Shown: in pieces, positions 46,167 through 64,000 of the stretch | Numbering within the stretch: position 1 is the stretch's first letter | Layout of the letters: every line of letters starts with the position of its first letter | IMG/VR virus record: IMGVR_UViG_3300034073_005389 | Span: 297,491 to 361,490 of that record | DNA length: 64,000 bases | Direction: 5' to 3' (one strand) | The notes under the pieces: model-generated | Database searches by the model: none | Told to the model about the DNA's origin: nothing | The model's input: the letters and a program-made list of their open reading frames with translations, nothing else | Made by a program: the position numbers and the translations under genes

Positions 46167-46400
46167 TTAGATTTCCACCATTGCCAAACGCACATTGGTA
46201 AACGTATACGGAACACCATCCGGCGTCTTATCAGGAAGATAGGAAAGCAGCTTCCTAGCCGCTTCATCCCTATTAGGAGAAGTACGAATACACTCAAGCA
46301 TCAGTCGATACAAGGGTTCATCATTACCCAGCCAAAGACACACATTCCAAGCGTTGTAGTTCTTATGCCCGTTATACTTCTTAGACATTTGTGCCTCCAC
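46167..46400 (-). CDS. Conserved hypothetical phage protein
   Basis: YNG..NY..WNV.LW..NDE.LY, TPDG. Confidence 0.75.
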   Translation of the reverse strand: MEAQMSKKYNGHKNYNAWNVCLWLGNDEPLYRLMLECIRTSPNRDEAARKLLSYLPDKTPDGVPYTFTNVRLAMVEI

Positions 46401-46413
46401 TAGACTTGAGTAG

Positions 46414-46734: not shown

Positions 46735-47087
46735 AAATACCTCTTCAACTATTAGAGTAATAGGTTACAATAACTGCTTGATATTCACCAGCAGTATTTA
46801 CCACAACTCCAAGTACCGCTCCCATTCCTCCAGGAAAAGAACTTCTCTCATAAGCAATAACATGCTTACGACCATGCATATAAGCATCTTCAGCAGAAGA
46901 AAATAGTTCTGGCAAAACCACAGGTTCTCTAGGAAACGGATTATGAAAACTATAAAAGGGAAGCCCATTAGAATAATGACCCTTTGGATTTAGGTCTAAA
47001 ACCTGAATGTTCATTGTAAACCTCTTATAAGAAAACTTCTTGATTATAAGATTAGGTATTTCAGAATAAGCCCCTGGCTACTTCCAC

Positions 47088-47150
47088 TACAGAAGCGCGG
47101 AATCGAACCGCACGCAGTTTCTAGTTTCGTGCACAAAACTATACTTCTGC
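47088..47150 (-). ncRNA. Reduced tRNA-like RNA (acceptor + T arm + one hairpin)
   Basis: GCAGAAG/CTTCTGT, TGCGG-TTCGATT-CCGCG, TAGTTTTG-TGCA-CGAAACTA. Confidence 0.5.
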
Positions 47151-49067
47151 TTATTCAGATAAGTTAGCTACTCTTACCTTGAAATACCTAATCTTATAAA
47201 CAAAAATATTAGGCAGTTTATACACATGCCCAGGTGTCAACATGATTGACTCCTTCATTCCAGAAACTATTTTACCACTTATACAAACACATAACAAAAA
47301 CAATACCACCCGAAACAAACCAAGAGCCAACCATAACCAAAAACCCAGTTTGTGCCGACATACTAACCTCTATAGTTATGTGATTTGTTGAATACAAAAA
47401 GGCAGTTTATACACATACCCAGGTGTATAAACTACGCTCAGTCTTCGATCCCGCCTTTGCGGAAGGCTTGGAAGACTTTACCAATGAAATAAGCGGGGAT
47501 GCAGATGAGCTTGGGGGGATTATGCGCCTCGGGTCCGGCGAGAACCAAGATTTCGTATTCGTCAGTCTCCGTGTTGTATCCAACAAGAACGTCATCGTTC
47601 AGAACGAGTTTGTTTTTCATGTGCTATCCTTTCAGAGTGAACTTTGAACCGCCATGTTTAGAGCAACAGAACAATCCATTCAGGAGTAACTTTGCACTAG
47701 ACACTTTGCCGCATTACGAATGATCCTCATCACAGCCTCCTTGTAGAATCACACACATTTGTGTATTATAATAAACCAACAAGCCGAGAGACTAAATAAA
47801 AATATGTCTCTCTTTCTTGCTGCAACAAGCAAACGATTATAGCTTATCTACTTGCAGGTAAATAAACCTTATCGTTTCTTTATAATCACTTGTTGGCTTA
47901 TTGTAATACACAAGGCAGTTTATACACTTGCCTAGGTGTTTGGGTTATTTGGTAAAAATAAGTGGGGCATTTGGTAAAAATAGGATTTGCACCTATTTCT
48001 CCCTATCCAGGGCGAGTTAGCTATACTCCTTTACCACTATCCCCGGTCCTATTAGATTGATAGGTAATCTCACTAATAGGTATTAGGTAGTTTAGACACT
48101 TGCCTAGGTGTGTATGGCTATTCTCTGAAAGGCTCCCAGGTTACTATCCTCGGTCCTATTAGATTGACTAAGAGGTAATAAAAATGGCAACCATCCAAAC
48201 ATCTTTATCCACGGTTGCCATCACCGGATAAAGAAATAGCAACCATCTCAACATACTTTACCCACGGTTGCCATCACCGAGTAAAGCTGGAACGGTTTCA
48301 GGTAAATCCGCCAACCAAAACTATTAGGCAGTTTATCCACTTGCCCAGGTGTATTCCTCACGGCAAGAAATACCTTCCATCCACCGCATCAACCTTATCC
48401 AGCATATCCAGAATCTTGTTCTTCTCCTCGCCTTCCGACAATCCTCGAACCACCAACATCAGATTGTCCCAGGCATCCTGATCAATGCCGTATTCATCAT
48501 CCAAAAGAGACTCAATGAAGTTGAACATTGTGCTTACCTCCAATCCAACCCAACCTTGTCCCCTACCTACAATCTCCCAAGTTTACCGATGGGAACCCCC
48601 ACTTATTGCCAACAAAGCCGAAACCTTGTTGGCAATCCTGTCAATCCTCTACCCGCTCCAAATAACTCTCCTCCTCATTAGAGGTTTTTTTGTAACCCGT
48701 AGCCACCACAATCTCTCCCGAACTGTCCTCCGAGAATACCGCATCAGGACAAACTTGCAACACCAGTTGCACCATTTCCGCAAAAGTGATCTTCATCACC
48801 ACCCAACCTTGTCAGGAGATACCACCAAACAAAAATACGGATTCCCAGGTTTCATCAATCGCAACTTGTTTCCCAGCTTTCCCATAAAACAATACACGCC
48901 AGCATAACCAGAAACACTTGCATACACCAAATCACCAATCCGCAAGTTCATTATGCCTCCTGTTTTATCTCCAACCAACCGCTCCCCCCACCTCTAATCA
49001 CCCAAGTTGACCGATGGGAGCCGTTTGCACTTACCAGGAAGCCCATTACAGGCTTCCCAGTAAATAA

Positions 49068-49394
49068 TCACTTTTGAAGCGCCTTCTTTTCCATATTCTC
49101 CGTGGCAACTTCCACCAGTTGCCGAACATACTTATACATCATCACTCTGGCTTTATTCAAATGATTTCCCGTCAACTTCTTACCACTCATTAGCCATTTG
49201 GCATAATAAGTGCCAAGCCTGGCATCAGGTCCATTGAAGCCTTTGCCATTCGTGTGCAATGTGGTATTGCTGGTTTGCTCATCCATGGTTTGACGAGCAA
49301 AAATAGCCAATACCGCCCTCTCCACCGCATAATCATTGCAAAGCAACAAATAACGAATGTAATCCGGACTATTCTTTTCCATCTTTTCCTCCAA
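49068..49394 (-). CDS. Conserved hypothetical phage protein
   Basis: RQT.DEQ...T.H.NG.GF...DA, KY..QL. Confidence 0.75.
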   Translation of the reverse strand: MEEKMEKNSPDYIRYLLLCNDYAVERAVLAIFARQTMDEQTSNTTLHTNGKGFNGPDARLGTYYAKWLMSGKKLTGNHLNKARVMMYKYVRQLVEVATENMEKKALQK

Positions 49395-49413
49395 AAAAAG
49401 ATTTTCAAGAACT

Positions 49414-49459
49414 TGGACGGAGGGAAAGGAATCGAACCTTTCCTACAACCATTCTCCGT
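49414..49459 (-). ncRNA. tRNA-minihelix-like element ending in CCA
   Basis: CGGAG-AATGGTTGTA-GGAAAGG-TTCGATT-CCTTTCC-CTCCG-T-CCA, intergenic. Confidence 0.5.
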
Positions 49460-49468
49460 ATTCTCTAA

Positions 49469-49801
49469 CTACTTGCGCGAAATACCACCATTCTGCCCAC
49501 GACTCGCCACAAACTTATTGCTCCCAGCAAGATAATCAGCAATCCGCTTGCTCAATCGACCATAATCCTCATACCGATTGCTAATCTTAGCAAACACCTG
49601 CCCAATCAGCAATGGCTTCACCACCTTTGCGTTATTGTTCTCATCAAAAATACTATTCAAAGCATTCTCAATCAGAATATCCTCCGAAAGATTGACATTC
49701 TCCCATTCCACCAAATCCCCCATAAACTTATTCAGCGTAGCCTCATGATCAATCGCACCCGCGTCATTACGAATAACATAGGAAACAAAATCAATCTTCA
49801 T
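49469..49801 (-). CDS. Winged-helix-like protein (AT-rich copy)
   Basis: SYVIRNDAGAIDHEATL.KFM.DL...IADYL...RGQNGG. Confidence 0.65.
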   Translation of the reverse strand: MKIDFVSYVIRNDAGAIDHEATLNKFMGDLVEWENVNLSEDILIENALNSIFDENNNAKVVKPLLIGQVFAKISNRYEDYGRLSKRIADYLAGSNKFVASRGQNGGISRK

Positions 49802-49869
49802 AATCTTTTTTTCCTTTCAGCAACCAACCATTCCCCCCACCTCTAATCACTCAGGTTGACCGATGGGCT

Positions 49870-50300
49870 AACCCATACATACTTATCTGCCTATTTACCC
49901 ATTCACACATACATACATTTTTTCTGCCCGCTTACGCACACCCGTATACCCACCAACCATAAACATACTCTCCCATTCATACACACCCCTACTTACACTC
50001 CCCCAATAACCTATAAACTATAATAAATACATTCCACCCAAACTAACTACCCAATATCTCAATACCTACACCCCCACACACATCTATATGCAAAATTTAT
50101 TCTACCTATACCTTATACAATACCACTATTCCTTATTTCCATAACTTACATTTCTCCCGCCCCCATTCTTTATTTCCCTAAATCTGCACCCCATTTCTTT
50201 CTTATTTCTACTTATTTATAAAATAGATTATGTAGTTTAGTGTATATGTGTATTGATGTGTCTATGTTTGTGTGCAGTATAATAAATAAAAAAAGTTTGT
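49870..50300. other. Non-coding strand-skewed boundary segment
   Basis: About 350 nt nearly G-free (C/A/T) on +, flipping to C-poor G/T-rich at about 50225; no ORFs. Confidence 0.7.
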
Positions 50301-50451
50301 TTTTGGCTAGGGCAAAAACCATTGTGTGCAGTTGTTTGAATCTATGCCTAAATGTGTTTTGCGCCCTAGCCAAAAAGCATTTTTTTTAGGGCTAGGGCTT
50401 ATGCCACACCCAATTGCCAACCGAATGCATTTATCCAAAAACACAAACACA

Positions 50452-50557
50452 AAAAAAAAAGCCAATGGCGGGATTTCCGCCATTGGCTTTCACACACGCA
50501 AAAAAAGACAAAAAAAAAGACAAAAAAAAAGCCCCAGCGCATTGGCGCTGGGGCTTT
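50452..50557 (-). terminator. Two tandem intrinsic terminators closing the GC-rich cassette region
   Basis: GCCAATGGCGG..CCGCCATTGGC and GCCCCAGCGC..GCGCTGGGGC, each preceded on + by long A runs. Confidence 0.8.
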
Positions 50558-50577
50558 GGGAGACGGTCAGTCAGGTT

Positions 50578-50925
50578 TCACCGAGCGATGCGCTCGACTC
50601 CGCCATTCTGACCACGCTGGGCGTGGAATCGCGTCTTGTCTCCCAAGTAATCCGCGATCTTCTTAGAGAATTCCCCGAACTGAGTGAACGAAACACCCTT
50701 TCCGAGAAGGTACTGGAACGCTTCGCCCACCACCAGGGGCTTGGGCATGCGTTTGTTATCGTGACGGTCAAAGACCGAGTTGACGGCTTCGCGGATGAGT
50801 TCGAACTCATCCGCCGAAGCGGACTCGAAAGCGATGAGGTCTTGCATGAACTTGTGGAGCGTTTGCTCGTGATCGATGGAACCATCATCCGAGCGAACCA
50901 CGTAGCTAGCGAGATTGATCTCCAT
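50578..50925 (-). CDS. Winged-helix-like protein (GC-rich copy)
   Basis: SYVVRSDDGSIDHEQTL.KFM.DL...IADYL...RGQNGG; GGAGG RBS. Confidence 0.7.
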   Translation of the reverse strand: MEINLASYVVRSDDGSIDHEQTLHKFMQDLIAFESASADEFELIREAVNSVFDRHDNKRMPKPLVVGEAFQYLLGKGVSFTQFGEFSKKIADYLGDKTRFHAQRGQNGGVERIAR

Positions 50926-51222
50926 GACTGTATCCTCCGAAGGGCGTTGCGGCGTGATTGCCTGCCCTCAATATTGGTTCTGCAGGTTGACCGATGGGTG
51001 CAACCGGGACAAAAAAACCTTTACTCAGGGGCATGTTGACCGATGGGTACAATCCATCTAAAAAACCAAAACCCCCGTTGAATAGCAGAGGTTGACCGAT
51101 GGGCGCTTTGACGCGCAGGTACATTGTAGATTAGAGGTTGACCGATGGGAACCCGATTGCACTTGGCAAAAAAAAATCCCAGGTGCCTAAGCACCTGGGA
51201 TAAGATAAGACTCACTTTAGTA

Positions 51223-51396
51223 CTAGCTGGTTCGCACCTGGTAACCCACCGCCTTCTCCAGGCTCTTGTCGGTTTGGCTCAGGTTCAGCTTGAGCGCTTC
51301 CTTACGAGCCGTAAGCAAACACTCGTACACCTTCACCACCGACTCAGACAAGGAGTTGCTTTCCAGGTCCAGCTGCAGACGAACGATCTTGTACAT
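51223..51396 (-). CDS. Cassette hypothetical protein
   Basis: AGGAGG RBS, start MYKIV. Confidence 0.6.
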   Translation of the reverse strand: MYKIVRLQLDLESNSLSESVVKVYECLLTARKEALKLNLSQTDKSLEKAVGYQVRTS

Positions 51397-51518
51397 AGAG
51401 CCTCCTATCAGGAATGACCCTGACACAGTAGTATTGCCTGGTTGACCGATGGGTGCGATCCATTAAAACTTGCTCAGGTACAGATGTACCTGAGCAAGTT
51501 AGGCTAAGCTACTACCTG

Positions 51519-52079
51519 TCAGCCGTGAGAGAAGCTGACCTTGGTGGGTCGGGTTGCCATCAGCTTGAAGTCGCTGGTGAACGTACGCTCCTTCATCACA
51601 GGTCCAGAACGCTTACCCATCACCCTGGCGATTGCCTCGTCACGGTCCACTTCCATCGTGATGTGATTAGTGGAGCCGTCTTTGTTGGTGATCTTGGAGT
51701 CAATCACCCCTCGACAACCTGGCGGTCCAGCATCTAGCTTGCGATCCACCCACCTGGACGCTTCCCCACTCATGTAGAAACCCATCTCCTCCAACACTCC
51801 ACCCTTCGCATCGTAGATGCAGGCGTTGATGGGCTTCTGCACCTTCTCACGCTGGCGTGTAGCCTTGGCTTCCTGCTTCTTCTCAGGAACCCTGAGAAGG
51901 TCTTGCAAGACCGCCTCTTGCACCAGCTTGAGCGCTGGCGTCGGATACAGCTCTCCCTTCTCCAGGCGAGCCAGAATCGAGACAGCCTCGGGAATCCCCG
52001 AAAGGAACTCCCTTTGAGCCTGCAAGAAAGCGGCAGCGGAAACCTTACCAGCGGACTGACGCAGGAACTTCTTGTGCAT
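51519..52079 (-). CDS. Cassette hypothetical protein
   Basis: GGAGG RBS, start MHKKF. Confidence 0.7.
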   Translation of the reverse strand: MHKKFLRQSAGKVSAAAFLQAQREFLSGIPEAVSILARLEKGELYPTPALKLVQEAVLQDLLRVPEKKQEAKATRQREKVQKPINACIYDAKGGVLEEMGFYMSGEASRWVDRKLDAGPPGCRGVIDSKITNKDGSTNHITMEVDRDEAIARVMGKRSGPVMKERTFTSDFKLMATRPTKVSFSHG

Positions 52080-52189
52080 AGGAACCTCCAAACAAAGCCG
52101 TGATTGGCTCACCTATGTTTGTGCAAGTTGACCGATGGGTTCAAGCCACTGAAAACGCTCTTGAGACCATGTGGTCTCAAGAGCCTAGA

Positions 52190-52399
52190 CTAGAAGCTCA
52201 AAGGCGATCCATCCTCGTGTTCAGACTCCTCCGGCAACATGTCAATGAATGGGGCTGCCGTCTCCCAATCATCCTCACAGGCACCTCCCCTGAGGTTGAG
52301 CGTGTGAATACGCTCAAAATCAGGAATATAGCTGTCCATCTCATCTTCCAACATGGGGACGGATCGAGGAACGTATTGCTTTCCCATAACTACCTCCAT
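52190..52399 (-). CDS. Cassette acidic hypothetical protein
   Basis: Between motif 52432 and 3' hairpin. Confidence 0.55.
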   Translation of the reverse strand: MEVVMGKQYVPRSVPMLEDEMDSYIPDFERIHTLNLRGGACEDDWETAAPFIDMLPEESEHEDGSPLSF

Positions 52400-52528
52400 G
52401 AACCATGATTGGTTCACAATAGGTTTAGCAAGTTGACCGATGGGCTACCTGGATTGCACTCAACAAAAAAAAACGCCCTAGTACTCGTGTGTGAGTACTA
52501 GAGCGTTTAGGTGTGTGAGACTGTTTAG

Positions 52529-53110
52529 TTACACGCCGAGAGCAGCAAGCCGCTCATCGATGTTATTGATGCGTTCTTGTTCCCACGCTTCCGCACCAGG
52601 ATCATCTTGGTTGTGAGCGTGTAGCAGTGCTTCCACTGCCACTCGACGCTGAGCAATCAAGTTGTCAATCTCTCGCTGCCTGGGATTGGGCATACCTTTG
52701 ACGTAGCCCTGCAAGGTAGCTTGAGCGGTTGGTGCTGGAGACTTGCCGTATCGCTCTTGTTGGATCAAGTACCTGGCTCGTTGCCTGGCACGATCCAACT
52801 GCAAGCTGTACAGCTCACCAGTGTATGCGCCCGTGAACTTCTCAATGGCTCTGATGATTTCTTTCTTTGTCTCCGCTTCGGACTTTTCCTTGTTTGCCAG
52901 ATTGCACTCATGGATGAACGTTTTAGCGTCCTCCAAGGTTGCAACCTTGGTCGGCATGGGCGGAGGCGTTTGAGCAGGCTTGACAGGCTTGCTTACCACC
53001 TTTCGCTCCTCGGGAATGGTCCGGATTTGGATTGTCTGACGCTTCTCTTGCAACTTGGCAAGAGACGCAGCATACAACGCAATCATTTCGCGGAGATCGA
53101 CTTTGTTCAT
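52529..53110 (-). CDS. Cassette hypothetical protein
   Basis: GGAG RBS, start MNKVD. Confidence 0.7.
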   Translation of the reverse strand: MNKVDLREMIALYAASLAKLQEKRQTIQIRTIPEERKVVSKPVKPAQTPPPMPTKVATLEDAKTFIHECNLANKEKSEAETKKEIIRAIEKFTGAYTGELYSLQLDRARQRARYLIQQERYGKSPAPTAQATLQGYVKGMPNPRQREIDNLIAQRRVAVEALLHAHNQDDPGAEAWEQERINNIDERLAALGV

Positions 53111-53231
53111 GTTTACTCCAATCCACTGACAAGTGCCAGTAGACACCTATGGTTGTGCTGGTTGACCGATGGGTGTGAGCCGCTGAAACAAAATGCTCAG
53201 GTCTATATAGACCTGAGCACCTGTCAACTCG

Positions 53232-53480
53232 TCACCTCTCGTCAGTGAGAACCATCACGAACTCCTTGTCAAGCAAGATCTTGAGCGCATCATCCTGTTC
53301 GGATGGATGCAGCTGTACTTCCAAGGGGAAGAATCGGCTCCAATCATAGGCTCGAACCCGGTATTCTTCCGGCTCACCTGCACAGTCCCAAGTAGGACCT
53401 TTGGCTGGAACATAGTCCAGCTCCAGGTCTACGGTAATGGTTTTGTGGTTGCGTACGATCTGCATCTGAATGTCTTTCAT
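53232..53480 (-). CDS. Cassette hypothetical protein
   Basis: AGGAGG RBS. Confidence 0.65.
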   Translation of the reverse strand: MKDIQMQIVRNHKTITVDLELDYVPAKGPTWDCAGEPEEYRVRAYDWSRFFPLEVQLHPSEQDDALKILLDKEFVMVLTDER

Positions 53481-53574
53481 AAAACCTCCTGGGTCAATGG
53501 TGGTGTAGTAAGTTGACCGATGGGTGCATACAACTGAAAACGCTCATGGAACCATATGGATCCATGAGCATAAA

Positions 53575-53820
53575 CTAGATGATGTTGAGCCTGCTCCAAA
53601 ACCTTTGGCTTTCTTTCCCTACCTCACACAGAGGCAAAGGAGCGACTTCATTTTGAGCAAGCATGCGCCTGACTTTACGCCCTTCCTGGTCCTCCTTGAA
53701 ACCAGGAAGGCAAATAAAGTCTCTGGAAACGGCTTCAGAGAATGCGTCCTCCAACGCAATCTCGAACTGTTTCTCAGACTCGAACTTATAGCCACTGATA
53801 GTGTAAATGCACTGTGCCAT
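53575..53820 (-). CDS. Cassette hypothetical protein
   Basis: GGAGG RBS, start MAQCI. Confidence 0.6.
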   Translation of the reverse strand: MAQCIYTISGYKFESEKQFEIALEDAFSEAVSRDFICLPGFKEDQEGRKVRRMLAQNEVAPLPLCEVGKESQRFWSRLNII

Positions 53821-53939
53821 AAATAGCACCTCCGTAACCTACTTACTGCTTGTTGACCGATGGGTTACCTGGATTGAACTTAACAAAAAAACCCAGGCTT
53901 ACATGGACTCATTAGAATCCACATAAACCTGGGCTCTCA

Positions 53940-54167
53940 CTACCTCACCAACACGAAGGTGTTGGGTTGACCCAGCCAGCTGTTGAGCTGGGTCGCCATC
54001 TGCCTTGCATCTTGGTATGTGTACTCTTGTACACGAGTTATGCCGTTGCGAGTGTCTCGCAACTTCCAACCTTTCTCCTCGAACAATGCCAGGAAACAAT
54101 CCTGGCAAATCGGCTTGCAGTTGAACTTGCATGTGCTTGCGCTTTTATCACACATCTGGCAGTTCAT
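53940..54167 (-). CDS. Cassette Zn-finger-like protein
   Basis: CQMC...CQDC. Confidence 0.6.
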   Translation of the reverse strand: MNCQMCDKSASTCKFNCKPICQDCFLALFEEKGWKLRDTRNGITRVQEYTYQDARQMATQLNSWLGQPNTFVLVR

Positions 54168-54280
54168 AATGCCTTTCCATCTACTCTGTTTGGTGAGTAG
54201 ACACCTATACCTATCTATGTTGACCGATGGGTGCACACAACTGAAACGTTGTGCAGGAGTTGCCTCCTGCACAACCTTTC

Positions 54281-54739
54281 TCAGTAGTCGTCGCGACCCG
54301 ACCACCGATCCTGTTCCATGTACTGCATGTACCTCTCCTCCTCGTTCCAGTGCTCGTAGGGTCGCATCATACGAGCGTTGTAGTCTCTGAGTACCGACTC
54401 CAGCGCCTCCCGCTTGGCGTGGAGCCTGTTGATGTAGGCGTCTCGCTGCGCCTCCATCTCTTCGTTCACCTGCTCTCGTAGGTGATCGCGCTCCTCCTTG
54501 GTCAAGTCGCGACCAAGAGCAGACTCACGACTACAGAACTCCTCATACGCACGCTCTTGGAAGAGGTCATCCTCCATCTCACGTGCGTGGTCGTCCCAGT
54601 GGTAACGCTCGATCTGAGCATTGGTATCATTCCACTGAGAGGCGAGACCCTTGATGATCTCCTCCTTTGCCTGAGCGATCAGGCGCTCGTGGTCCGTAGC
54701 GTTTTCGGGGCACTCGATGTTGATCACGTATCCACGCAT
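54281..54739 (-). CDS. Cassette acidic protein, paralog of 45425-45865
   Basis: RPYEHWNEEERYMQYME. Confidence 0.7.
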   Translation of the reverse strand: MRGYVINIECPENATDHERLIAQAKEEIIKGLASQWNDTNAQIERYHWDDHAREMEDDLFQERAYEEFCSRESALGRDLTKEERDHLREQVNEEMEAQRDAYINRLHAKREALESVLRDYNARMMRPYEHWNEEERYMQYMEQDRWSGRDDY

Positions 54740-54867
54740 ATCAGCCTCCAGACAAGCCTTGATTGGCTCACTTATGTTTTTGCATGTTGACCGATGGGTA
54801 CAGCCCACTGAAAAAAAACCGTGTCAGGAAATTCCTGACACGGCTAGGTATGTACGCTAGTTGGCGA

Positions 54868-55074
54868 TCACTTGACCTTGATCACCAGACCGTTTTGCAC
54901 GGTCACCTCTGCGTACCAGGTATGGGGCTGCGGGTAGTGCGGTCCACCTACCGCAGTAGTCCCATTCTCTGGCGGGTTGCCGAGACCAGGTGCGTAAATA
55001 TGCACCGGTTTCCCGGCAGCCACATCATCCTTGAGTTGCTTCTTGGTCTTGTAGTTCTTGGTGGTGTAGAACAC
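54868..55074 (-). CDS. Cassette conserved small phage protein
   Basis: KTKKQLK...GPHYPQPHTWYA. Confidence 0.75.
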   Translation of the reverse strand: MFYTTKNYKTKKQLKDDVAAGKPVHIYAPGLGNPPENGTTAVGGPHYPQPHTWYAEVTVQNGLVIKVK

Positions 55075-55202
55075 TGAACCCTCCTAGACAAAGCCGTGAT
55101 TGGCTCAATGGTAGTTGTGCAGGTTGACCGATGGGTACGGACCACTGAAACATGCTTGGAAGCATTCGCTTCCAAGCACGTTTTGTTGAGAGTGTTGTTA
55201 GA

Positions 55203-56827
55203 TTACTTCTTGTTGCTCTCCTTGTAGAGTACGATCAGCTGTTCGTATACCTGGCTGTGATGGTACAATCCTTCCTGCCATTCCAGCAGGAGTTTTTTCA
55301 CCCTTTCCTGCTGAATCTCGTTGAGAGCGTTGTACAGGTACAGACCTGGCAGTTCCCCATCCCACAGCTGGGTGAGAAGCCTCTCCTCTTCCATGACCAG
55401 AGCCTTGATCTTCTGGTCGTACGCCAACTGCTTGCGCAGCTTGGCGATACGGTTTTTGATCTGGTGTACGGTGTTGCGGTTGCGGTTGCTCATGTGAGAC
55501 TCCGAGAAAGCCGTGTGTGGAGTTGTACGGCTCACATACAGTTATGCGGGTTGACCGATGGGTTAACTTGTTTGCATTTAACAAAAAAAACCCTTGGCTT
55601 GCTTGCGCAAACCAAGGGCTTTATCACTGCAACGAAAGCAAGAACATCTCTCCTTTCTGAGTGAAAGACTTGAGAATCATACCGCCAGCCATGGAGTAAA
55701 CTCCAAGGTCTGTGCCAGGATGAACTTTGCTGTTGAACTTTGCCACACGATCTCCATTGGGAGCCATGTAGGCAATGGTCAGCCCTTGCTCCAGGGCTTT
55801 CTCGAACTCAACGTGGCTAATCTGCATAGCTACCTCCTCGTATTGAAGTATGTATATTGACCGATGGGTGCAAACAACTAAAACTGCAAGCACCTGATTG
55901 CTCAGGTGCTTGCAAGAGTCAGTACATGCTGATGCTGTTCTCAATCTCTTGGTCTTGGCTCAACCGAGCCGCCTCCTTCCAGCGGCGCTGAACCATCCAA
56001 CGGGTGACCAGCCCGTTGTACTTGAATGCTTTTTCGCACGCTTCTACGGTTTTCCGCCATGCCTCTGCCGCCTTTTGGTTACCGGTGGCGGCAGCGAACT
56101 GCCCCTCCACCGAAGCCAGGATGGAGAGAGAGATGAAAGGCGTGCTGGATCGCATGATCTTCATGTTTATCTCCTAGAGCCATTGGTTGATTGGCTCACT
56201 TGTAGTTGTGCAGGTTGACCGATGGGTACATACCACTAAAACTGCAAGTACCTGATTGCTCAGGTACTTGCGTGTTTCATGAGTTCACGTATTCCTCCTC
56301 TGCCTTATTGATGATGCGGTGCGCCAAGTTGTCAATCTCATCCATCTCTGCCTCGGTGGCTTGGTCGAGCGCACCCGCAGACACAAGCTCCATCACCTTC
56401 AGATGAAGGTTGCCGATGTTATGGCAACCATTCACGTAGTTGTATTCTCCTCGGATCTTTCCGAAATGGTTCTTGTTACAAGCAAACCCGTTGTTACGGA
56501 GATGCTTGATGACCAGGGGGATCAGCCTACCCAGTTGCATAACTTGCCTTTCCGAGCCATAGTGGCTCACTTATGTTTTTGGAAGTTGACCGATGGGTAC
56601 AACCAACTGAAACATGCTCAGGATTGCTCCTAAGCATGCTTGTCTCAGAGAGATAGGCGAGATACCACCCTGCACCCCTGACGAACCAACGAGGCAAACA
56701 TGCGCTCCCAGTTGTCCTCAGAGACGAGCATGGTTGCCTCGTCTCCTTCTTTGGTAATGTACCACAGGCGTACATTACATTTTTCTTTGATCCCAGGGCT
56801 AACTGCCCTGGGTTTTAGCTTACTCAC
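55203..56827 (-). other. Five single-gene cassettes with small hypothetical proteins
   Basis: 55203-55493, 55624-55827, 55919-56164, 56277-56540, 56645-56827; each between a motif copy and a 3' hairpin. Confidence 0.6.
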
Positions 56828-57039
56828 GTCTACTTATCCTTTCTTGCGTGAACAATAGTCCAACGCAAAGAAAAAGAACCCCATAGAACATGAAGTCAAA
56901 TAACTCCATAACTATGTTTGTACATGTTGACCGATGGGTGCGAACCATTGAAACAAGAACCCAGGATTGCTGTTGCAATCCTGGGTTCTTATCTGCTCAC
57001 CCACCGGAATCCGTTAGGACTCAACAGTGGGTGAGTGTG

Positions 57040-57900
57040 TCAACCGAGCGCCAGCTTCGCCAGGGCGATTGCGCCCTCCCGACTGCGGGCGCCGCCGATG
57101 AACCGTGCGTTGTGGCAGAATACGGAATCATGAACTCCAGTCACTGCCGCCAGCTGTTCGTTTCGTAGCCCCGCCCATGCCTCGGGGAGCGGTCGGCGTT
57201 GCCCGAAGCTCCCCATGCTGGGCGGAACGCACTGGACCAGCCAGTCGTCCGCTTGGGGGAACACGAGGAAGAGCGCGTGGGTGCTCTCCTCCACCACCGT
57301 CTGCATGACCGGCATGAACCGGTCCAGAACGATGATCTTCCCCTCGATTGCGTTGGAGATGGCGTGGCGAGCGCCCTCCAACGCGAGCATCCGACCCTGC
57401 GCAGAGGCGATCACCCTGCGCAGGTGTGCCTCTGCAAACTCGACGGCGCGGGCGAATGCGTCGTCGAAGTTTTGCGCCTCGTGCCAGCAGGGGTTGAACC
57501 CGCTGACCACATCAGAGAAGGTGTGGTGATCCACACCTTCAGTAATGCTGCGGGTGCCGTACCCGCAGTCGAGGGCGTCAACCGCCCAGATGAGGTCGCT
57601 TTCGACCTCCCCCTCCACGCCGGGGGCGATGGAAGCACCAAAGTGCTTCCACACGAGACCGGCGCTGCTGTAGGGCACCCCATTGGGGCGCACGCCAGCG
57701 CCCCCCTTCTGGTGGTGGTCGAATCGTAGCGTGGTGGGGTCATAGACCCCTCCCACGTCCACAACAACCATCCCCATCTCGATCACCTTGGGATCGCGGG
57801 TCCGGATAACCGGACCCTCGAACCCCGCCATGCGCAAAATAGCGCAGGCGAGAACGTCGTCGGCGTGGAAGGGACCATTGTGAGTGACAATACTGCTCAT
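57040..57900 (-). CDS. MYG1/UPF0160-family DHH exonuclease
   Basis: THNGPFHADD, RTRD, DVGGVYD, FDHHQ, SSAGLVW, FCH. Confidence 0.9.
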   Translation of the reverse strand: MSSIVTHNGPFHADDVLACAILRMAGFEGPVIRTRDPKVIEMGMVVVDVGGVYDPTTLRFDHHQKGGAGVRPNGVPYSSAGLVWKHFGASIAPGVEGEVESDLIWAVDALDCGYGTRSITEGVDHHTFSDVVSGFNPCWHEAQNFDDAFARAVEFAEAHLRRVIASAQGRMLALEGARHAISNAIEGKIIVLDRFMPVMQTVVEESTHALFLVFPQADDWLVQCVPPSMGSFGQRRPLPEAWAGLRNEQLAAVTGVHDSVFCHNARFIGGARSREGAIALAKLALG

Positions 57901-58032
57901 GTGAGCCTCCTAGAAAGCCGTGTGTGAAGTTGTACGGCTCACATACAGTTGTGCAAGTTGACCGATGGGTACAAGCCATGTAGAAAATCGGTGAGTCAGA
58001 ATCTCGAAAGACTCAATGACTCACCGAGTGTG

Positions 58033-58506
58033 TCAACCGTAGAGCGTTCGGAGGGTCGCGCAAACGCGCGTCGCCTCCGATTGTTGGAACCGCTCCACTT
58101 TCTGGAGCAGTTCGATTGACTCTTCCCGGTCCATGCCGGGAAGCTGACGGAGTGCCAGCAACAGCAGTTTGCTGCTGGCGGTGGGTGCGCCGTCGAAGCG
58201 CACCACCTCACCGTTGAGGGTGAGGGAGAAGGGCTCATCGCCCTCCTCGCCCTCGCCCTCGCCCTCATTGCCGAGTGCCTCACCGAGTGACCATGCGGTC
58301 ACTCGGTGGGAGGAGGTGCCTGAGTGCCCGTCAAGGCGCACCGACACCCCCTCCTCGTGGGTGAGGGTAAGAACTGCGGGGAGGAGTAACGTACTCCTCC
58401 CGATGTGGTGCCTGAACGAGCCGAGGACAATCGCCCCCAGCTCGTTCAGCACCACCTGGCGGGGTTCAAACCCCGCCATGGCTGCGAAACCAGTTGCAAT
58501 AATCAT
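58033..58506 (-). CDS. Cassette hypothetical protein
   Basis: AGGAGG RBS, start MIIAT. Confidence 0.6.
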   Translation of the reverse strand: MIIATGFAAMAGFEPRQVVLNELGAIVLGSFRHHIGRSTLLLPAVLTLTHEEGVSVRLDGHSGTSSHRVTAWSLGEALGNEGEGEGEEGDEPFSLTLNGEVVRFDGAPTASSKLLLLALRQLPGMDREESIELLQKVERFQQSEATRVCATLRTLYG

Positions 58507-58680
58507 TGCAACCTCCTTGCAGAGTCTATCCACTACCCGTAATAGATCAGCATGACCTGTCATCAGGTAACAGCTTCGACTCTCACATACAGTTGTGCAA
58601 GTTGACCGATGGGTACAAGCCATGTAGAATCAGTGAGCCGGAATCCCGAAGGACTCAACAGCTCACTGATTCCGGGACAC

Positions 58681-58911
58681 CTACAGATCGTAGACGCCCC
58701 GTTGTCCCACGATTGACCAAGAGGAGTACTCCTCTTGGTCAATCATGGTTGTGTGTCCGACGATGAGGTTTTCAAACCTCTCGTCGGTCACCAGTTTGTA
58801 GGCGTCGCCACGTAGCAACGCCTTTGCCGCCCGCATGGCGAGCGGCAGAGGGAGACCCGTCTTTCGACGGATCTCCCTCCCCAAAACCACACGTCTTCGT
58901 TTCAGTGTCAT
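58681..58911 (-). CDS. Cassette basic hypothetical protein
   Basis: GGAGG RBS, start MTLKRRR. Confidence 0.6.
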   Translation of the reverse strand: MTLKRRRVVLGREIRRKTGLPLPLAMRAAKALLRGDAYKLVTDERFENLIVGHTTMIDQEEYSSWSIVGQRGVYDL

Positions 58912-59059
58912 TTGACACCTCCACTTACTTGTTTGCAAGTTGACCGATGGGTGCGTGCCAGTTAGATTGACCAGCCGGAATCCCGAAGGACTCAACAGCT
59001 GGTCAATACTACCCCCTCACTGAAGCTCAACCCTCTCAGGGAACTTCAGTGAGGGACCT

Positions 59060-59407
59060 TCACACCTCACACCAGGGAATAGTCTCCCTGGTGAAATCCT
59101 CCTCCACCTCATGCCAGCCGAACTGGTCGGCATGAGGTGAAACCCTCCCCACGTAGCGGACCAAACGAAATGGTCCGCTGTGGGGGTAGTCCGTATCGTA
59201 CGCGGCGGACTCTTCGTCCACCTCGTACGCCACCACCCACGCCATTCCGGCGTGGAAGCCACGCGCCCACGGGGGCGCGTCGTCGCCCCGAAGAGCCCAG
59301 AGCCCTTCGGGGTGGGTATAGAGGAGGTCACGGACCTCCTCCATGGTGGGGATGGGGAGGTCCGTCTCCGGAACCTCCCCATCCCAATCAGGAAACATCA
59401 CCCTCAT
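59060..59407 (-). CDS. Cassette acidic hypothetical protein
   Basis: AGGAGG RBS, start MRVMF. Confidence 0.65.
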   Translation of the reverse strand: MRVMFPDWDGEVPETDLPIPTMEEVRDLLYTHPEGLWALRGDDAPPWARGFHAGMAWVVAYEVDEESAAYDTDYPHSGPFRLVRYVGRVSPHADQFGWHEVEEDFTRETIPWCEV

Positions 59408-59575
59408 GGTGACCTCCTTGTAGAGTCTATCCACTACCCGCAACAGATCACCACGATCTATTATCAGGCAGTAGCTTCGACCCTCACATACAGTTATGCA
59501 AGTTGACCGATGGGTGCACGCCAGTTAGATTGACCAGCCGGAATCCCGAAGGACTCAACAGCTGGTCAATCTCAC

Positions 59576-59797
59576 TCACTGCGGGAGGAAGCTCCGAAGA
59601 GCCTCCATCGCCACAGCGAGGGTTGCGCCCCCGCCCGTGCGGTCCCACGCCCCTCGGGCGTGGTTCTCCGCTGCTGGCACGTAGGTGACGTGCCAGCAGC
59701 GCCCGCAGGCGCACCCATCCGGGGAAGGTGGCGTGATCTCCACCTTCCCCGGACCCCAGGCGGCACAAGCCGCCTGTACCAGAGATTCGAAGTCCAT
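59576..59797 (-). CDS. Cassette hypothetical protein
   Basis: AGGAGG RBS, start MDFES. Confidence 0.6.
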   Translation of the reverse strand: MDFESLVQAACAAWGPGKVEITPPSPDGCACGRCWHVTYVPAAENHARGAWDRTGGGATLAVAMEALRSFLPQ

Positions 59798-59972
59798 GTG
59801 GACCTCCTCAGAGAGCGTATCCACTACCCGCAATAGATCACCACGATCTATCATCAGATAGAGGTTTCCACCCTCACATGCAGTTATGCAGGTTGACCGA
59901 TGGGTGCGAGCAGTGTAGAAACTCGGCAAGCCGGAATCCCTTACGGGACTCAACAGCTTGCCGAGGGGGGAG

Positions 59973-60185
59973 TCAATGAAGCTTGAAAAGCTTCATTGCC
60001 TCCCCCGCTGTCATTTTTTGCGGGAAGTCGTATTCATATACGACCCCCGCTACGTCGTACGTGAGTCCGAGGTACACAAGTACCTCGGACTCTGGGGGGA
60101 GGACTGCCAGCCTCTGGCAGTCCTCCCCGTGCAAATATGGATAGCCCCATAAATCGGGGCTCATCCACTCGTAGAATTCCTCCAT
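59973..60185 (-). CDS. Cassette protein, paralog of 61286-61489
   Basis: M.EFYE...LP..SEV.VY.G..Y...G.VY....P..MTA.EA.K.F. Confidence 0.7.
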   Translation of the reverse strand: MEEFYEWMSPDLWGYPYLHGEDCQRLAVLPPESEVLVYLGLTYDVAGVVYEYDFPQKMTAGEAMKLFKLH

Positions 60186-60447
60186 GGAATTCTCCTTAGA
60201 GAGCGTATCCACTACCCGCAATAGATCACCATAATCCATTATCAGGTAACAGCTTCAACTCTCACATACAGTTACGCAGGTTGACCGATGGGTGCAAGCC
60301 ATGTATATTAACAAAAAAATTGAAATACTCATATACTCTTGTGTGAAAAGAAATAAGTAACTTATACAAGTTGACCGATGGGTGCAAGCCGTGTAGAGTA
60401 ACGAGCCGGAATCCTTTGCAGGACTCAACGACTCGTCACTCGCATTG

Positions 60448-61110
60448 TTACTTGCGATTTTTCTTGCCACCAAAGTGGCTCAGAAAACTCGCAATCGCAC
60501 CCGCCGATGCGGGCTCACCTCGCACCGGAGGCGGAGGGGGAGGAGGAGGGGGAGGAGGAGGAGGGGGAGGGTATTCTGAATAATACCTCTCCTTATAATA
60601 CTCCTCCTTCAATCCCCCTGCACTCATGACAAAGCGCGAATACGCGATTTTGTCATGAAAGTTCTCCCAAGAGACCGACCAATCAGCCTCAATTGGGAGA
60701 ACCAGCCACTCTTTGCTGCGGTTTCCATACCGGGACGTGCTCAAATCCCGGTGAAGTTTACACCCCCGGAACACCGGGTCCCCCAGGGTGTAGCGTTTCC
60801 CCCCTTGGGGGATTGCCCTGACCGTGACGCATTGCGCCACGATCAGATCGTCGGCAGCCTTTTCAGCTGCCTTGCGTGCGGCTTCTTCAGCCGCTTTGGC
60901 TGCTTGCGCAGCCTCCCGCGCAGCTGCCTGCGCCGCCCGCTCCGCCCGCTCCTCCGCCAGACGAGCCTCTACCTGGGCGGCAAATGCCGGGTCCAGGTAG
61001 CTCCTTCCCGCCGCCCCGATAGGCGGCGGAGCCGCTTGCCCCCACGGATCGTAGGAGCCGCGCTGCGTGCCGGGCTCCTCCCCGTTGAGATAACGGTTCC
61101 AGTCACCCAT
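60448..61110 (-). CDS. Cassette protein with Ala/Glu/Lys helix and poly-Pro tract
   Basis: GGAGG RBS; AAEEAARKAAEK; run of about 14 Pro. Confidence 0.7.
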   Translation of the reverse strand: MGDWNRYLNGEEPGTQRGSYDPWGQAAPPPIGAAGRSYLDPAFAAQVEARLAEERAERAAQAAAREAAQAAKAAEEAARKAAEKAADDLIVAQCVTVRAIPQGGKRYTLGDPVFRGCKLHRDLSTSRYGNRSKEWLVLPIEADWSVSWENFHDKIAYSRFVMSAGGLKEEYYKERYYSEYPPPPPPPPPPPPPPPVRGEPASAGAIASFLSHFGGKKNRK

Positions 61111-61285
61111 AGGTGACCTCCTTGTAGAGTCTATCCACTACCCGCAATAGATCACCATGATCTATTATCAGGTAGAGGCTTCCACTCTCACATGCAGTTA
61201 TGCAGGTTGACCGATGGGTGCGAGCAGTGTAGAAACTCGACAAGCCGGAATCCCTTGCGAGACTCAACGGCTTGCCGAGCGACGG

Positions 61286-61489
61286 TCAGAGGAAGGCTTT
61301 TTGAGCCTCCTCTGCCGTCATTACTTCCGGGGCGCCGTGTTGGTACACGTACCCCGACATTTCGTATTCAATTCCGAAGTACACGCGTACTTCGGAATCG
61401 ATCGGGAGGGCGCGGAGGCGGACTTTATCCGCCTCCGCGAGCCAGGCGCGACCTACGTCGCCCCCCCCGCACTCGTAGAATTCCTGCAT
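61286..61489 (-). CDS. Cassette protein, paralog of 59973-60185
   Basis: See paralog alignment; AAGGAG RBS. Confidence 0.7.
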   Translation of the reverse strand: MQEFYECGGGDVGRAWLAEADKVRLRALPIDSEVRVYFGIEYEMSGYVYQHGAPEVMTAEEAQKAFL

Positions 61490-61804
61490 GGAATTCTCCT
61501 TAGAGAGCGTATCCACTACCCGTAACAGATCACCACGATCTATTATCAGATAGGGGCTTCCACTCTCACATATAGTTGTGCAGGTTGACCGATGGGTGCA
61601 GACCATGTATATTAACAAAAAAATTGAAGCAATCAACCGCTACTCGGTATTACTTGCGTGCCTTGTCGAGAAAATAATAAGTAAATAAATAAATACAAAA
61701 CAATAACTTGAATAGCCATAGATTCAAATAAGTTGACCGATGGGTGCAAACCACCAAAACTTGAACCCCCGGACTCACCTATACAGATGAGCCGGGGGTC
61801 CATC

Positions 61805-62035
61805 TCAGTCGGCACCTCCTTTCTCGGTTGCGGTGGCGGCGGTGGCGTACCCGTGGAACCACGGGTCGCCACCACCGATGAGGTGGGCGTCGGAGGCTGC
61901 CCAGTCAGCCTCCGACATGTTGTTGAGGGCGCGGGGACCCCAGTAGGGTCCCGCCCCCGAACCAAAGGTAAAGGCGTCACCTGGGGACGCCTCTACCTCC
62001 CAGGTTTTACCCTGGAAAACAACGACGCACTTCAT
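61805..62035 (-). CDS. Cassette hypothetical protein
   Basis: Between motif 62096 and 3' hairpin. Confidence 0.55.
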   Translation of the reverse strand: MKCVVVFQGKTWEVEASPGDAFTFGSGAGPYWGPRALNNMSEADWAASDAHLIGGGDPWFHGYATAATATEKGGAD

Positions 62036-62259
62036 GTGCGCCCCTTTCTGAGAGCCTCGGCGGGATTGCCATAGCTCTCACATACAGTTACGCAGGTTGA
62101 CCGATGGGTGCGAACCATGCAAACAAAAAAGTGGATGGTCTTTCGACCATCCACTCATCTAGCTGCGGTCTCGCTCCAGATTGGTGGAGTCCCCGCTCAG
62201 GACTGCTAGAGTCCCCTCAGGTTACGCCTGAGGACGTTCCCTCGTCACCACCGAGAAGA

Positions 62260-62619
62260 TCAGACGATCTCTCGGAAAGCGACGAACCCGAATACGGCGG
62301 TCTTGGTGACCGAACCGTCAGGGTTCGTCACTTCGACGGAGCGTCGCTCCGTCGTGGTGACGACCACCCGTCGCCCCTTGGAGAGCAGGCTCCGGATGGT
62401 GGTGTAGACCAGGGAGGTTTCTCCCATGATCATCACCACGTCTCCGGGAGCGCATTGCTCCACCAAAGTGGCGGCGAGGGTGGCAACTTCCGCCATGGTG
62501 GCGGAAGCGGGGACGTTCGGGAACGCGATGTCCCTGATGTCCCCGCCGAGCGCCTTGGCGGCGCTCAGCTGGTCCTCGCCCCACTTCTGGGACGGGTGGT
62601 TAGAAATGTTCACAAACAT
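62260..62619 (-). CDS. csx20: Csx20-like CRISPR-associated (putative ring nuclease) protein
   Basis: FVNISNHPS.KW...Q..AA..G.I.D..FP.V, MGE, TTER, K...F.FV.FRE pattern recalled for Csx20-type proteins. Confidence 0.65.
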   Translation of the reverse strand: MFVNISNHPSQKWGEDQLSAAKALGGDIRDIAFPNVPASATMAEVATLAATLVEQCAPGDVVMIMGETSLVYTTIRSLLSKGRRVVVTTTERRSVEVTNPDGSVTKTAVFGFVAFREIV

Positions 62620-63149
62620 TTCCAACCTTCCTATCGGCTTGATCGGGCTCCTCTATCAAGCCCAGCCGATAACCCTACCACAAGCGATGAATCAACATGA
62701 CTCATCATCAAGCGGCAGGCTCACTTATAGTTGTGCAGGTTGACCGATGGGTGCAGACCCCTGAAATAAAAAACCCCCCGGTCACTCCTGCCCACTATCA
62801 CCCGGTGCCTTTCAGCGTTGGTGAAGTGTTTTTATGGCAATAATTGGAGGGACCGGGGGGGATGCTAGGTCATAACAGCATCCTCCTATAACTGTCACTT
62901 CACTTAGTAACAGTTACACTAATAGATAAGTATGTTGACCGATGGGTGCGGACCCCTGAAATAAAAAAACCCCGCCACGCTGCAAAGCGTGGCGGGGCAC
63001 AACAGGGCATAGAGATAACCCTTTCCGTAGCCTATAGTAGTAAGATAACTCCTTCCGGCAAAATGCTCCGAAGTTATCTTCGTACCTTAGCTACACTAAT
63101 AGATAAGTATGTTGACCGATGGGTTAACTTGTTTGCATTTAACAAATAA

Positions 63150-63468
63150 AAAAACCCTGACCAGCTTTCGCCAGTCAGGGTTTGTATGAACGGCGTAGGG
63201 ACTCTGCCTCCCTCTTTCACCCTCTAAGTCACGGGCTCCGTTCTACTTGGTCCTTTGAGCATCGCAATGGTGTGCGTGCTCGTTTTTCCTCCGCGCCGAC
63301 CCCAGGGTAGGACTCTTTGCCCCGTATCGGGTTTGCGTGTGCGCTTATCCCGCCCTGTCTATCCAGGTTTCAGGCGGTTCTTTCCCGGCGCGCACAATGG
63401 GTCCTATAAAGGACCGTCAGTAGGGGAACACATAAGTGTCCGAGATCCCCAGATGCAACTAGCATCCT
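63150..63468 (-). ncRNA. Candidate structured non-coding RNA (~320 nt)
   Basis: Between motif 63484 and a terminator; no RBS-led ORF; nested long-range stems. Confidence 0.5.
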
Positions 63469-63616
63469 ACTATAACTCAGTATGTTGACCGATGGGTACA
63501 AACCATGTAGAATCTCGACAAGCCAGAATCCCTTGCGGAACTCAACAGCTTGTCGAGTCTCTCTCCCCACCTCTACCAGAATCCGTTAGGACTCGATGAT
63601 AGAGGTGGGGAGGTGT

Positions 63617-63859
63617 TTACTTGCGGCGGCTAAGCTGGTGGGCTCGCGCCCAGCCAGCCGCCGACGCCGCCCATGCCGCCACCGCCGCCGTGAGGCAGGC
63701 GATGGCGAGCAGGGCGATTCTGGCGGGGGCGTTTTTCGCCCCCGCCGCCCTCGCCGCCCAGTGGGCGGCGAGGGCGCGCCAAAGCGCGCTCCTCTCCGCC
63801 GCCCAGGCGGCGCGCGCCGACCTGAGGTCGGCGCGGATTCGAAAGAGGGACTTTTCCAT
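63617..63859 (-). CDS. Cassette Ala/Arg/Trp-rich small protein
   Basis: Purine-rich RBS, followed by conserved 3' hairpin. Confidence 0.55.
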   Translation of the reverse strand: MEKSLFRIRADLRSARAAWAAERSALWRALAAHWAARAAGAKNAPARIALLAIACLTAAVAAWAASAAGWARAHQLSRRK

Positions 63860-64000
63860 GGTCCCTTCCCTTCAAGCCCCATTGACACCCATAGACAATC
63901 GTCTCTCACCATGAGAGATTGGACTTCTCTGGCATGCCATGCGGCTCATGTATGGTTTGCTAGGTTGACCGATGGGTACAAACCATGTAGAAATTCGACA

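Follow-up and report, generated by a model that had tools for sequence, protein, structure and literature searches.

Why would a jumbo phage carry a member of a protein family tied to type III CRISPR loci as a single gene, with no such locus beside it? This question is raised by a csx20-like gene on the minus strand, at positions 62260-62619, in the last 64 kb of the IMG/VR contig IMGVR_UViG_3300034073_005389 (361,490 bp). These 64,000 nucleotides (nt) are called the window below, and positions are counted within them. A preliminary description, made from the letters of the sequence, had taken the gene for a stand-alone ring nuclease, captured from a host and repurposed by the phage as an anti-CRISPR protein in an early cassette. 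The analysis presented here suggests that the encoded protein is a viral ring nuclease of cyclic tetra-adenylate (cA4), acting against type III CRISPR like AcrIII-1 on a different fold; we consider this rather probable, with real room left for the alternatives weighed below.

Family Assignment and Conserved Residues

The coding sequence (62260-62619, minus strand) starts with ATG at 62619, ends with the stop codon TGA at 62262-62260 and encodes a protein of 119 amino acids (aa) of the PF27247/MJ1673 family. The preliminary description had called the product Csx20-like, and a search with profiles of Cas proteins bore this out. The PADLOC Csx20 model PDLC01397 matches with E=6.9e-21, residues 1-117 of 119 being aligned with profile positions 1-113 of 114, and the C-terminal part of the PADLOC CARF-HEPN-Csx20 fusion model matches with E=4e-20. 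The NCBIfam model CAS_Csx20 (NF040559) aligns with residues 32-117 (E=3.7e-13, 49.9 bits). The PF27247 (MJ1673) assignment was taken from the annotation of the database homologs, 35 of 35 of which carry it; the local copy of Pfam does not include this model. The Atlas cluster that contains the protein has 163 members, 96% of them with PF27247 and mostly labelled as tailed phages. A family for the protein was not found in PHROGs, and no Pfam match to DUF1874 was obtained at E up to 10.

The family is large: a profile built from 32 members found 4,530 cluster representatives at E <= 1e-3 among 1.84 billion proteins, including many C-terminal fusions to parts of 450-670 aa. Natural tandem doubles with two full domains and a length of approximately 290-300 aa (P0036, P0037 and others) also occur in the family.

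Conservation was analyzed in an alignment of 67 members, in which 17 members from type III loci were compared with 15 members of the phage clade at a cut-off of 85%. Nineteen positions are conserved at this level with the same residue in both sets (F2, N4, S6, N7, H8, P9, S10, W13, Q17, D30, F33, P34, G66, E67, R92, F110, F112, F115 and R116), and the window protein keeps all 19. Only among the phage members are N35, L70 and K106-T107 nearly invariant. All motifs named in the preliminary description (NxSNHPSxxW, FPxV, MGE, TTER and FVxFRE) are present in the 119-aa open reading frame (ORF), as NISNHPSQKW at residues 4-13, FPNV at 33-36, MGE at 65-67, TTER at 89-92 and FVAFRE at 112-117. They are the conserved positions of the family and not chance strings. 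Judging by its sequence, the protein is almost certainly a member of the Csx20 family.

Predicted Structure

The AlphaFold2 model of the monomer has a predicted local distance difference test score of 97.3 and a predicted template modelling (TM) score of 0.85. It consists of a beta-alpha-beta-alpha-beta-alpha core followed by a long two-stranded beta-hairpin, with the SNHPS loop located after the first strand and the GE loop after the third core strand. In CARF domains, the ligand is held at loops in corresponding positions, and the SNHPS and GE loops of the modelled protein may well be the counterparts of these loops.

A Foldseek search against the PDB gave weak matches, the best with E=3e-3. 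The list includes the cA4 ring nucleases Sso2081 (7ygh) and Sis0455 (7z56), cA4-bound Cam1 and Csa3, with E=1e-2 to 5e-2 and TM scores of 0.35-0.42. When the family profile was searched against PDB sequences, no Csx20 structure came up, only matches at chance level. Csx20 has been described as a derived, CARF-like Rossmann fold, and a weak list of CARF-type matches fits this description (PMC12409355). The tandem doubles look like a covalent form of the presumed dimer, and P0036 and P0037 would lend indirect support to a dimeric working unit.

The Phage Contig and the Absence of cas Genes

The source of the window is a jumbo phage of freshwater and the subsurface, and the sequence is present in metagenome runs of both kinds; among the runs listed, none was of RNA. 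The gene csx20 lies 1.4 kb from the contig end, and its product is 100% identical to the protein encoded there in IMG/VR. Eleven tRNA genes and a group I intron are also found in the window, together with genes for a helicase of the UvrD type, an RNA ligase and enzymes of the radical-SAM and SPL-like kinds; all ORFs are at most 485 aa long.

The preliminary description had noted neither cas genes nor a CRISPR array in the window, and the scans agree with it. A CRISPR-like repeat array was not found in the 64 kb. A Pfam scan of the 61 ORFs of at least 100 aa at 1-49.4 kb gave 22 families, and the full list contains no Cas family, only helicase, methyltransferase and housekeeping-type families. 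For the same 61 ORFs, no Cas family is among the best 25 of the 54 PADLOC families matched, which leaves room for a Cas match weaker than E ~1e-10; these 25 are all of the GajB/RTasHel helicase type with one member each, consistent with the single UvrD helicase ORF. Twenty-four further ORFs at the high-GC end of the window gave no Pfam match. The gene is thus indeed a stand-alone one, being monocistronic within 64 kb where no cas gene was found. No Cas10 was confirmed in viral contigs; the alignment of three sequences, with patterns outside the GGDD motif, was uninformative in this respect.

Megablast searches of 50,697 deposited phage genomes with the segments at 60-64 kb and 5-17 kb gave no match, and the UvrD helicase found only matches below 40% identity in deposited phages. 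A tblastn search of the same genomes with the window protein and two other family members gave no match either. The phage csx20 examples published so far are therefore distant from the group to which the window protein belongs.

Genomic Contexts and Phylogeny of the Relatives

Homologs with 50-95% identity to the window protein (P0001, P0004, P0005, P0008 and P0018) are surrounded by strings of small ORFs without annotation, on phage-like contigs that reach 144 kb, and strong PHROG matches were found in two of these contexts. There is no CRISPR array beside these homologs in their contigs. No type III protein was found among the 53 larger neighbouring ORFs of these contigs and of 15 IMG/VR loci, in the best 25 of 217 PADLOC families. 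No type III gene is listed within 10 kb in four other phage-like contexts (L006, L007, L008 and L011) or in the short contigs of the window's phage type (L001-L005). A TnpB/Cas12f-like gene (Pfam Cas12f1-like_TNB; PADLOC Cas12f, E=9e-82) can be noted at L008:5157-7115, approximately 3 kb from the csx20 homolog.

A survey of cellular genomes (one genome per species, 185,579 species) revealed 24 loci encoding relatives with 30-47% identity. Seventeen of the 24 homologs belong to type III loci, and arrays are present within 10 kb in 11 of these 17. According to PADLOC, the ORFs near cellular csx20 match Csm3 (15), Cas7 of type III-D (9), Csx1 (9) and Cas10 (8); a seven-member cluster was called Csx1 from PADLOC counts and not by mapping member by member. 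A Csx1-like gene is located directly upstream of csx20 in L015, L019 and L023, and a Csx1-like ORF directly downstream in L014. In L024, L025 and L027, Csx20 forms the C-terminal domain of a fusion with a CARF-HEPN protein; such a fusion is what would be expected of a self-limiting cA4 effector. Reverse transcriptase-Cas1 is found in L020 and a type III-D Cas7 in L021. Ring nucleases have been reported to co-occur only with cA4-dependent effectors, Csx20 especially with Csx1 (PMC12409355), and the analysis of contexts reproduced the linkage of Csx20 and Csx1 for the relatives of the window protein.

The remaining seven cellular loci have no cas genes. Two of them are contigs of metagenome-assembled genomes labelled 'Peribacteria', which contain the closest genomic relatives (45-47% identity); one of these contigs has a strong PHROG match. 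Another of the seven loci is identical to an IMG/VR viral contig.

The maximum-likelihood tree (67 sequences, 128 columns, unrooted) places the window protein and the sequences from phage-like contigs on one side of a branch and every member from a type III locus on the other. The support of this branch is moderate (84/66), and the grouping is present in 98% of the bootstrap trees. Further viral sequences from IMG/VR are interspersed with the CRISPR-linked ones (at least seven changes of label), which indicates repeated exchange between viruses and CRISPR loci. As the tree is unrooted, it does not give the direction of transfer. The preliminary description had spoken of a captured host ring nuclease; if a recent capture is meant, this wording does not hold, since the gene belongs to a populous phage-borne group and its nearest relatives from type III loci are at most 46% identical. 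The tree does show that csx20 of the window was not taken recently from a locus of a host.

Proposed Role and Alternative Explanations

The protein keeps the full set of conserved residues, and the window contains no CRISPR system for it to serve; thus, a viral ring nuclease is the best explanation. The preliminary interpretation as an anti-type III protein is retained as the most plausible one, given that CRISPR-linked relatives are located beside or fused to Csx1 and that one Csx20 cleaves cA4; its attributes 'early' and 'captured host' are not retained. The CRISPR-associated Csx20 degrades cA4 in vitro, completely at a 100-fold excess of substrate (PMC12409355). Catalysis by the window protein is likely. 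We infer the catalytic activity, the cA4 substrate, the role in counter-defence and the timing of expression, and the proposed course of events is as follows. The gene csx20 would have a transcript of its own, started at a promoter-like box specific to the phage, and would encode a small ring nuclease of the Csx20 family (MJ1673, PF27247) that is CARF-like and probably forms a homodimer. When the host type III complex recognises phage RNA and the host Cas10 makes cA4, the phage Csx20 would bind this messenger and cut it to linear products, so that Csx1-type cA4-dependent effectors would never be activated or would be switched off.

Several points weigh against the role proposed. With 49.9 bits, the NCBIfam match falls short of the equivalog cut-off of 70 for NF040559, so identical function cannot be assumed for the window protein. 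No enzymology of any phage Csx20, the window protein included, was found in the literature, and the related Csx15 mostly binds cA4 and degrades it slowly (PMC13148439). The role also presupposes a cA4-signalling type III system in the host of the phage. Purifying selection on csx20 is only modestly documented: the comparison with the 95%-identical copy in L001, from another sample, gave 8.5 synonymous and 8.5 non-synonymous differences (dS 0.099, dN 0.033), that is, a ratio of non-synonymous to synonymous rates (dN/dS) of 0.33 from 17 differences. Finally, a type III locus encoded by the phage itself, which the preliminary description had set against its own reading, was not found in the 64 kb, and the cas gene search covered these 64 of the 361 kb of the contig.

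The last point bears on the possibility that the protein is an ordinary Cas accessory, the off-switch of a type III system or of an effector dependent on cyclic oligoadenylates that this jumbo phage encodes in another part of its genome. CRISPR-Cas systems are known from some huge phages, most of the contig lies outside the part searched, and the Cas10 scan of viral contigs decided nothing. Nevertheless, this explanation is very improbable: in cellular loci, csx20 has cas genes a few kb away at most and is usually an immediate neighbour of csx1 or fused to it, whereas the gene considered here is monocistronic among ORFs without relatives (ORFans), the 64 kb showed neither an array nor a cas gene, and the phage-like contexts and the short contigs of the same phage type likewise list no type III gene within 10 kb. 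The protein could serve as a sponge for cA4 or another cyclic oligoadenylate, or as a very slow nuclease, with the same effect on type III signalling. The small CARF-like Csx15 is a good binder of cA4 with very slow cleavage (PMC13148439; PMC12409355), and the model, the fold matches and the conserved residues do not separate binding from catalysis. We regard a sponge as unlikely, even though phage sponges for cyclic nucleotides are known: the protein keeps the polar residues S6, N7, H8, S10, E67 and R92, which are not obviously required for binding alone. Moreover, the Csx20 studied in vitro degraded the 100-fold excess of cA4 fully in 1 h, and phages with Csx20 have been seen, unlike phages with Csx15 (PMC13148439, PMC12409355).

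A different main target, namely cyclic tri-adenylate (cA3) signalling of a CBASS, of a type III system with NucC or of a guard system such as Panoptes, or else a broad specificity, has slightly poorer prospects still. Csx20 degrades cA3 fully at tenfold more enzyme (PMC12409355), and the residues conserved only in phages, N35, L70 and K106-T107, may reflect a shifted specificity; yet the cellular relatives are tied to the cA4-activated Csx1 and not to cA3 effectors, and the reported co-occurrence of ring nucleases is with cA4 effectors only (PMC12409355). No more credible is a reuse of the fold outside cyclic-nucleotide signalling, or a passenger gene without a role in infection, which the weak PDB matches (best E=3e-3) and the ORFan nature of other genes around it would allow. 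The residue set common to the type III-locus members is fully kept, however, and 95% protein identity persists in a strain with rearranged neighbours, with more synonymous than non-synonymous change per site. The size of the phage group, as seen in the 163-member Atlas cluster, also speaks against a passenger.

The csx20 Unit

The csx20 gene forms a monocistronic unit, in which a box and a leader precede the ribosome-binding site and the ORF, and a terminator follows. The promoter-like element tttcaggggtctgcaCCCATCGGTCAACctgcacaacTATAAGtgag is located at 62720-62766 on the minus strand, with the core box at 62752-62740 and TATAAG at 62729-62724; the conserved element of approximately 45 nt, read on the minus strand 121 nt 5' of the ATG, is tttcagNggNttgcaCCCATCGGTCAACctgcacaacTAtAaGTGAG. 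It is the position of this element that suggests a promoter role. The structured 5' leader with two hairpins (62633-62722, minus strand) was found by folding: the segment 62735-62610 has a minimum free energy of -50.3 kcal/mol (z=-5.1), and one compensatory change, A-U to G-C, distinguishes the leader from its L001 copy. The ribosome-binding site AGGAAGG (62626-62632, minus strand) lies 6 nt ahead of the ATG. The TTG at 62625, chosen as the start by the ORF-listing program, is unlikely to be used, as it abuts this site. The unit is closed by a terminator-like hairpin of 12 pairs with a T-run (62129-62156, minus strand; terminator scan and sequence), and the next promoter box beyond it is at 62109-62097.

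Independent samples support the gene: three metagenome runs from the subsurface contain a contig of 674 nt that corresponds to 62082-62755 with zero differences, and one freshwater run contains a diverged copy of csx20.

The Repeated Box and the High-GC Cassette

The csx20 unit is part of a cassette of high GC content (50-59%) at 49800-64000, minus strand, which comprises approximately 30 promoter-led units and was delimited by composition, unit list, codon usage and the shuffling of units between strains. The 13-nt core of the box, TTGACCGATGGGT in the plus-strand reading, has 41 matches at no more than one mismatch in the window, all in one orientation, while 0.07 are expected by chance. The motif promoter of its own that the preliminary description had ascribed to csx20 is the copy at 62740-62752. 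On the minus strand, the element of approximately 45 nt consists of the core ACCCATCGGTCAA and, 10 nt downstream, TAtAaGTGAG. Thirty-five copies are located at 49856-63977 and the others at 27182, 33229, 39051, 42302, 43769 and 49007. At 49.8-64 kb, the copies are spaced by approximately 50 to 1,000 nt, typically by about 350 nt. Most of them are followed by a small ORF that has a ribosome-binding site (sites of the GGAGG type are found at most cassette ORFs), and the approximately 30 box-led units end in hairpin-plus-T-run terminators. In IMG/VR, multiple copies of the box were found, among the matches listed, only on the csx20 contig; elsewhere there are single chance matches.

The cassette had been described as early. 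The box with the TAtAaG element does not look like an early promoter of the sigma-70 type, and the avoidance of certain codons, considered below, bears on timing only indirectly; this part of the description was not upheld. Activator-dependent middle promoters, such as those of T4, are a known class, and a box near -30 with a -10-like hexamer is, by analogy, at least as reminiscent of them as of early promoters.

The GC content is 32-37% in the first 46 kb and 50-59% from 50 kb to the contig end, with a transition at approximately 46000-52000. The csx20 gene itself has a GC content of 0.63, and 0.83 at third codon positions. All 11 tRNA genes of the window are on the minus strand at 3327-45985 and show a bias towards AT-rich codons (Leu-UAA four times, Arg-UCU twice, Ile-UAU). 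The codons UUA, AGA and AUA, which the phage tRNAs serve, make up 30, 33 and 15% of the Leu, Arg and Ile codons, respectively, in the low-GC genes versus 1, 5 and 1% in the cassette; csx20 contains none of them. This avoidance fits translation of the cassette before the phage tRNAs accumulate and fits equally well its acquisition from GC-rich sources. An assembly chimera as the origin of the high-GC end was rejected: the box is also found in the low-GC part (27182, 33229, 42302, 43769 and 49007), GC rises gradually between 46 and 58 kb, and related contigs from other samples have the same architecture.

The stretch 62947-61117, which comprises the csx20 unit and the two units downstream of it, is colinear with L001 at 93.6% identity. 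L001 lacks the unit at 63481-63181, and three further units are arranged in a different order (57938-63620 versus L001:1334-6091). The unit boundaries and the breakpoints between the window and L001 coincide with the repeated element. The order of the units in the cassette is less certain, since the contigs of the sequencing runs break at the repeated box.

Directly upstream of csx20, three promoter-to-terminator units without ORFs are located on the minus strand (62765-62935, 62960-63112 and 63150-63485); they are candidate small RNAs of the phage. The ORF-free unit of 320 nt folds much better than shuffled sequence (z=-4.5). A search of the ORF-free units beside csx20 against Rfam gave nothing at gathering thresholds, only terminator-like matches below them. 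Other cassette units share different conserved leaders, one of which translates as 'GDLLRVVDxLxKE'.

The only other annotatable gene of the cassette encodes a metal-dependent exonuclease of the MYG1/UPF0160 family (57040-57900, minus strand; Pfam E=6e-76; GC 0.64) and has its own promoter box. That this enzyme degrades linear oligoadenylates or other signals would be pure speculation. A link between Csx20 and the MYG1 exonuclease in the Atlas was dropped, as the probability of profile similarity is 0.05%. At 60448-61110 on the minus strand, a cassette protein of 220 aa is encoded with an Ala/Glu-rich helical middle and a run of 15 prolines near the C-terminus; no family match was found for it.

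A wider reading of the region can be offered tentatively, and we hold it to be possible rather than probable. The csx20 gene may be one unit of a modular counter-defence array of approximately 30 like-built units, which, given their avoidance of the codons that need phage tRNAs, could be translated by the naive host at the start of infection and which would be gained, lost and reshuffled between strains by recombination at the repeated element; the phage group of Csx20 would be an old and specialised lineage of viral ring nucleases and not a recent capture from hosts, and the other ORFan and ORF-free units would form a pool of anti-defence functions. On this doubtful reading, the array would occupy a high-GC region of at least 14 kb in a jumbo phage with 33% GC, each unit being built of the 45-nt promoter element with a leader behind it, then either a small ORF or a non-coding RNA, and finally a terminator.

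Two features of the low-GC part of the window can be mentioned. The group I intron (Rfam, 52 bits) is located at 630-824 on the minus strand. At 28400-29700, minus strand, the hexamer CCGTAA is repeated in approximately 166 copies over 1.2 kb, with several small paralogous ORFs; their products start with MEEYFMLVG and continue as a low-complexity peptide rich in Gly, Tyr, Asn, Asp and Ser.

Significance and Comparison with Known Systems

Ring nucleases are a general viral answer to type III CRISPR, as they act by eliminating the second messenger, so that the kind of effector in the host does not matter. Phage-borne and CRISPR-borne Csx20 form a natural pair, whose comparison could tell if the viral versions have been optimised for fast action in the way AcrIII-1 has in comparison with Crn1. 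The activity of Csx20, the presence of csx20 in phages and mobile genetic elements and the idea of co-option have already been published (PMC12409355, PMC13551039). The gene described here belongs to a distinct and populous phage-borne Csx20 group which, judging from tblastn, is absent from deposited phage genomes; the more unusual feature is the modular promoter cassette with host-like GC in a low-GC jumbo phage. The viral ring nucleases with experimental backing found in the literature are AcrIII-1 and a viral SAVED protein (PMC12751052), and Crn4b homologues are further viral examples (PMC12830947). If the Csx20 group works as predicted, it would be a third, widespread viral ring-nuclease fold. 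The csx20 cassette is also a compact hunting ground for further counter-defence genes.

The CRISPR-associated Csx20 (Hoikkala et al. 2025, PMC12409355) resembles the window protein in size (approximately 120 aa), in its full-length profile match and, as it seems from the prediction, in a CARF-like fold. Motifs found in both are NxSNHPSxxW (following strand 1), FP, GE (following strand 3 of the core), ER, and FxFxxFR (C-terminal hairpin). The CRISPR-associated protein belongs to type III loci, whereas the window protein, with a predicted activity, is encoded in a promoter-led single-gene unit of a phage and belongs to a separate phage-borne group. In the Csx1-Csx20 fusions (PADLOC CARF2--CARF_HEPN_CSX20; L024, L025 and L027), the C-terminal domain aligns over the whole window protein. 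The fusions carry the effector part as well, while the window protein is the isolated domain; they are analogous to the self-limiting ribonuclease Csx1-Crn2.

Closest in the mode of action proposed is AcrIII-1 (Crn2, DUF1874), a viral cA4 ring nuclease and anti-CRISPR (Athukoralage et al. 2020, cited in PMC12409355). It is a small enzyme of viral origin that degrades cA4 and thereby renders harmless every type III effector dependent on this messenger, of whatever type, as is proposed for the window protein; its fold and family are unrelated, and it works in vivo, whereas the role of the window protein is predicted. Csx20 itself has been found in four phage genomes (PMC12409355), and csx20 homologs in acr-aca14 operons have been proposed to be co-opted anti-CRISPRs (PMC13551039). 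The latter are also located on mobile elements without cas genes and are likewise regarded as co-opted counter-defence. They belong to Aca-controlled operons, whereas the csx20 unit of the window is monocistronic, has no ribbon-helix-helix/Aca gene and is preceded by a different, repeated control element.

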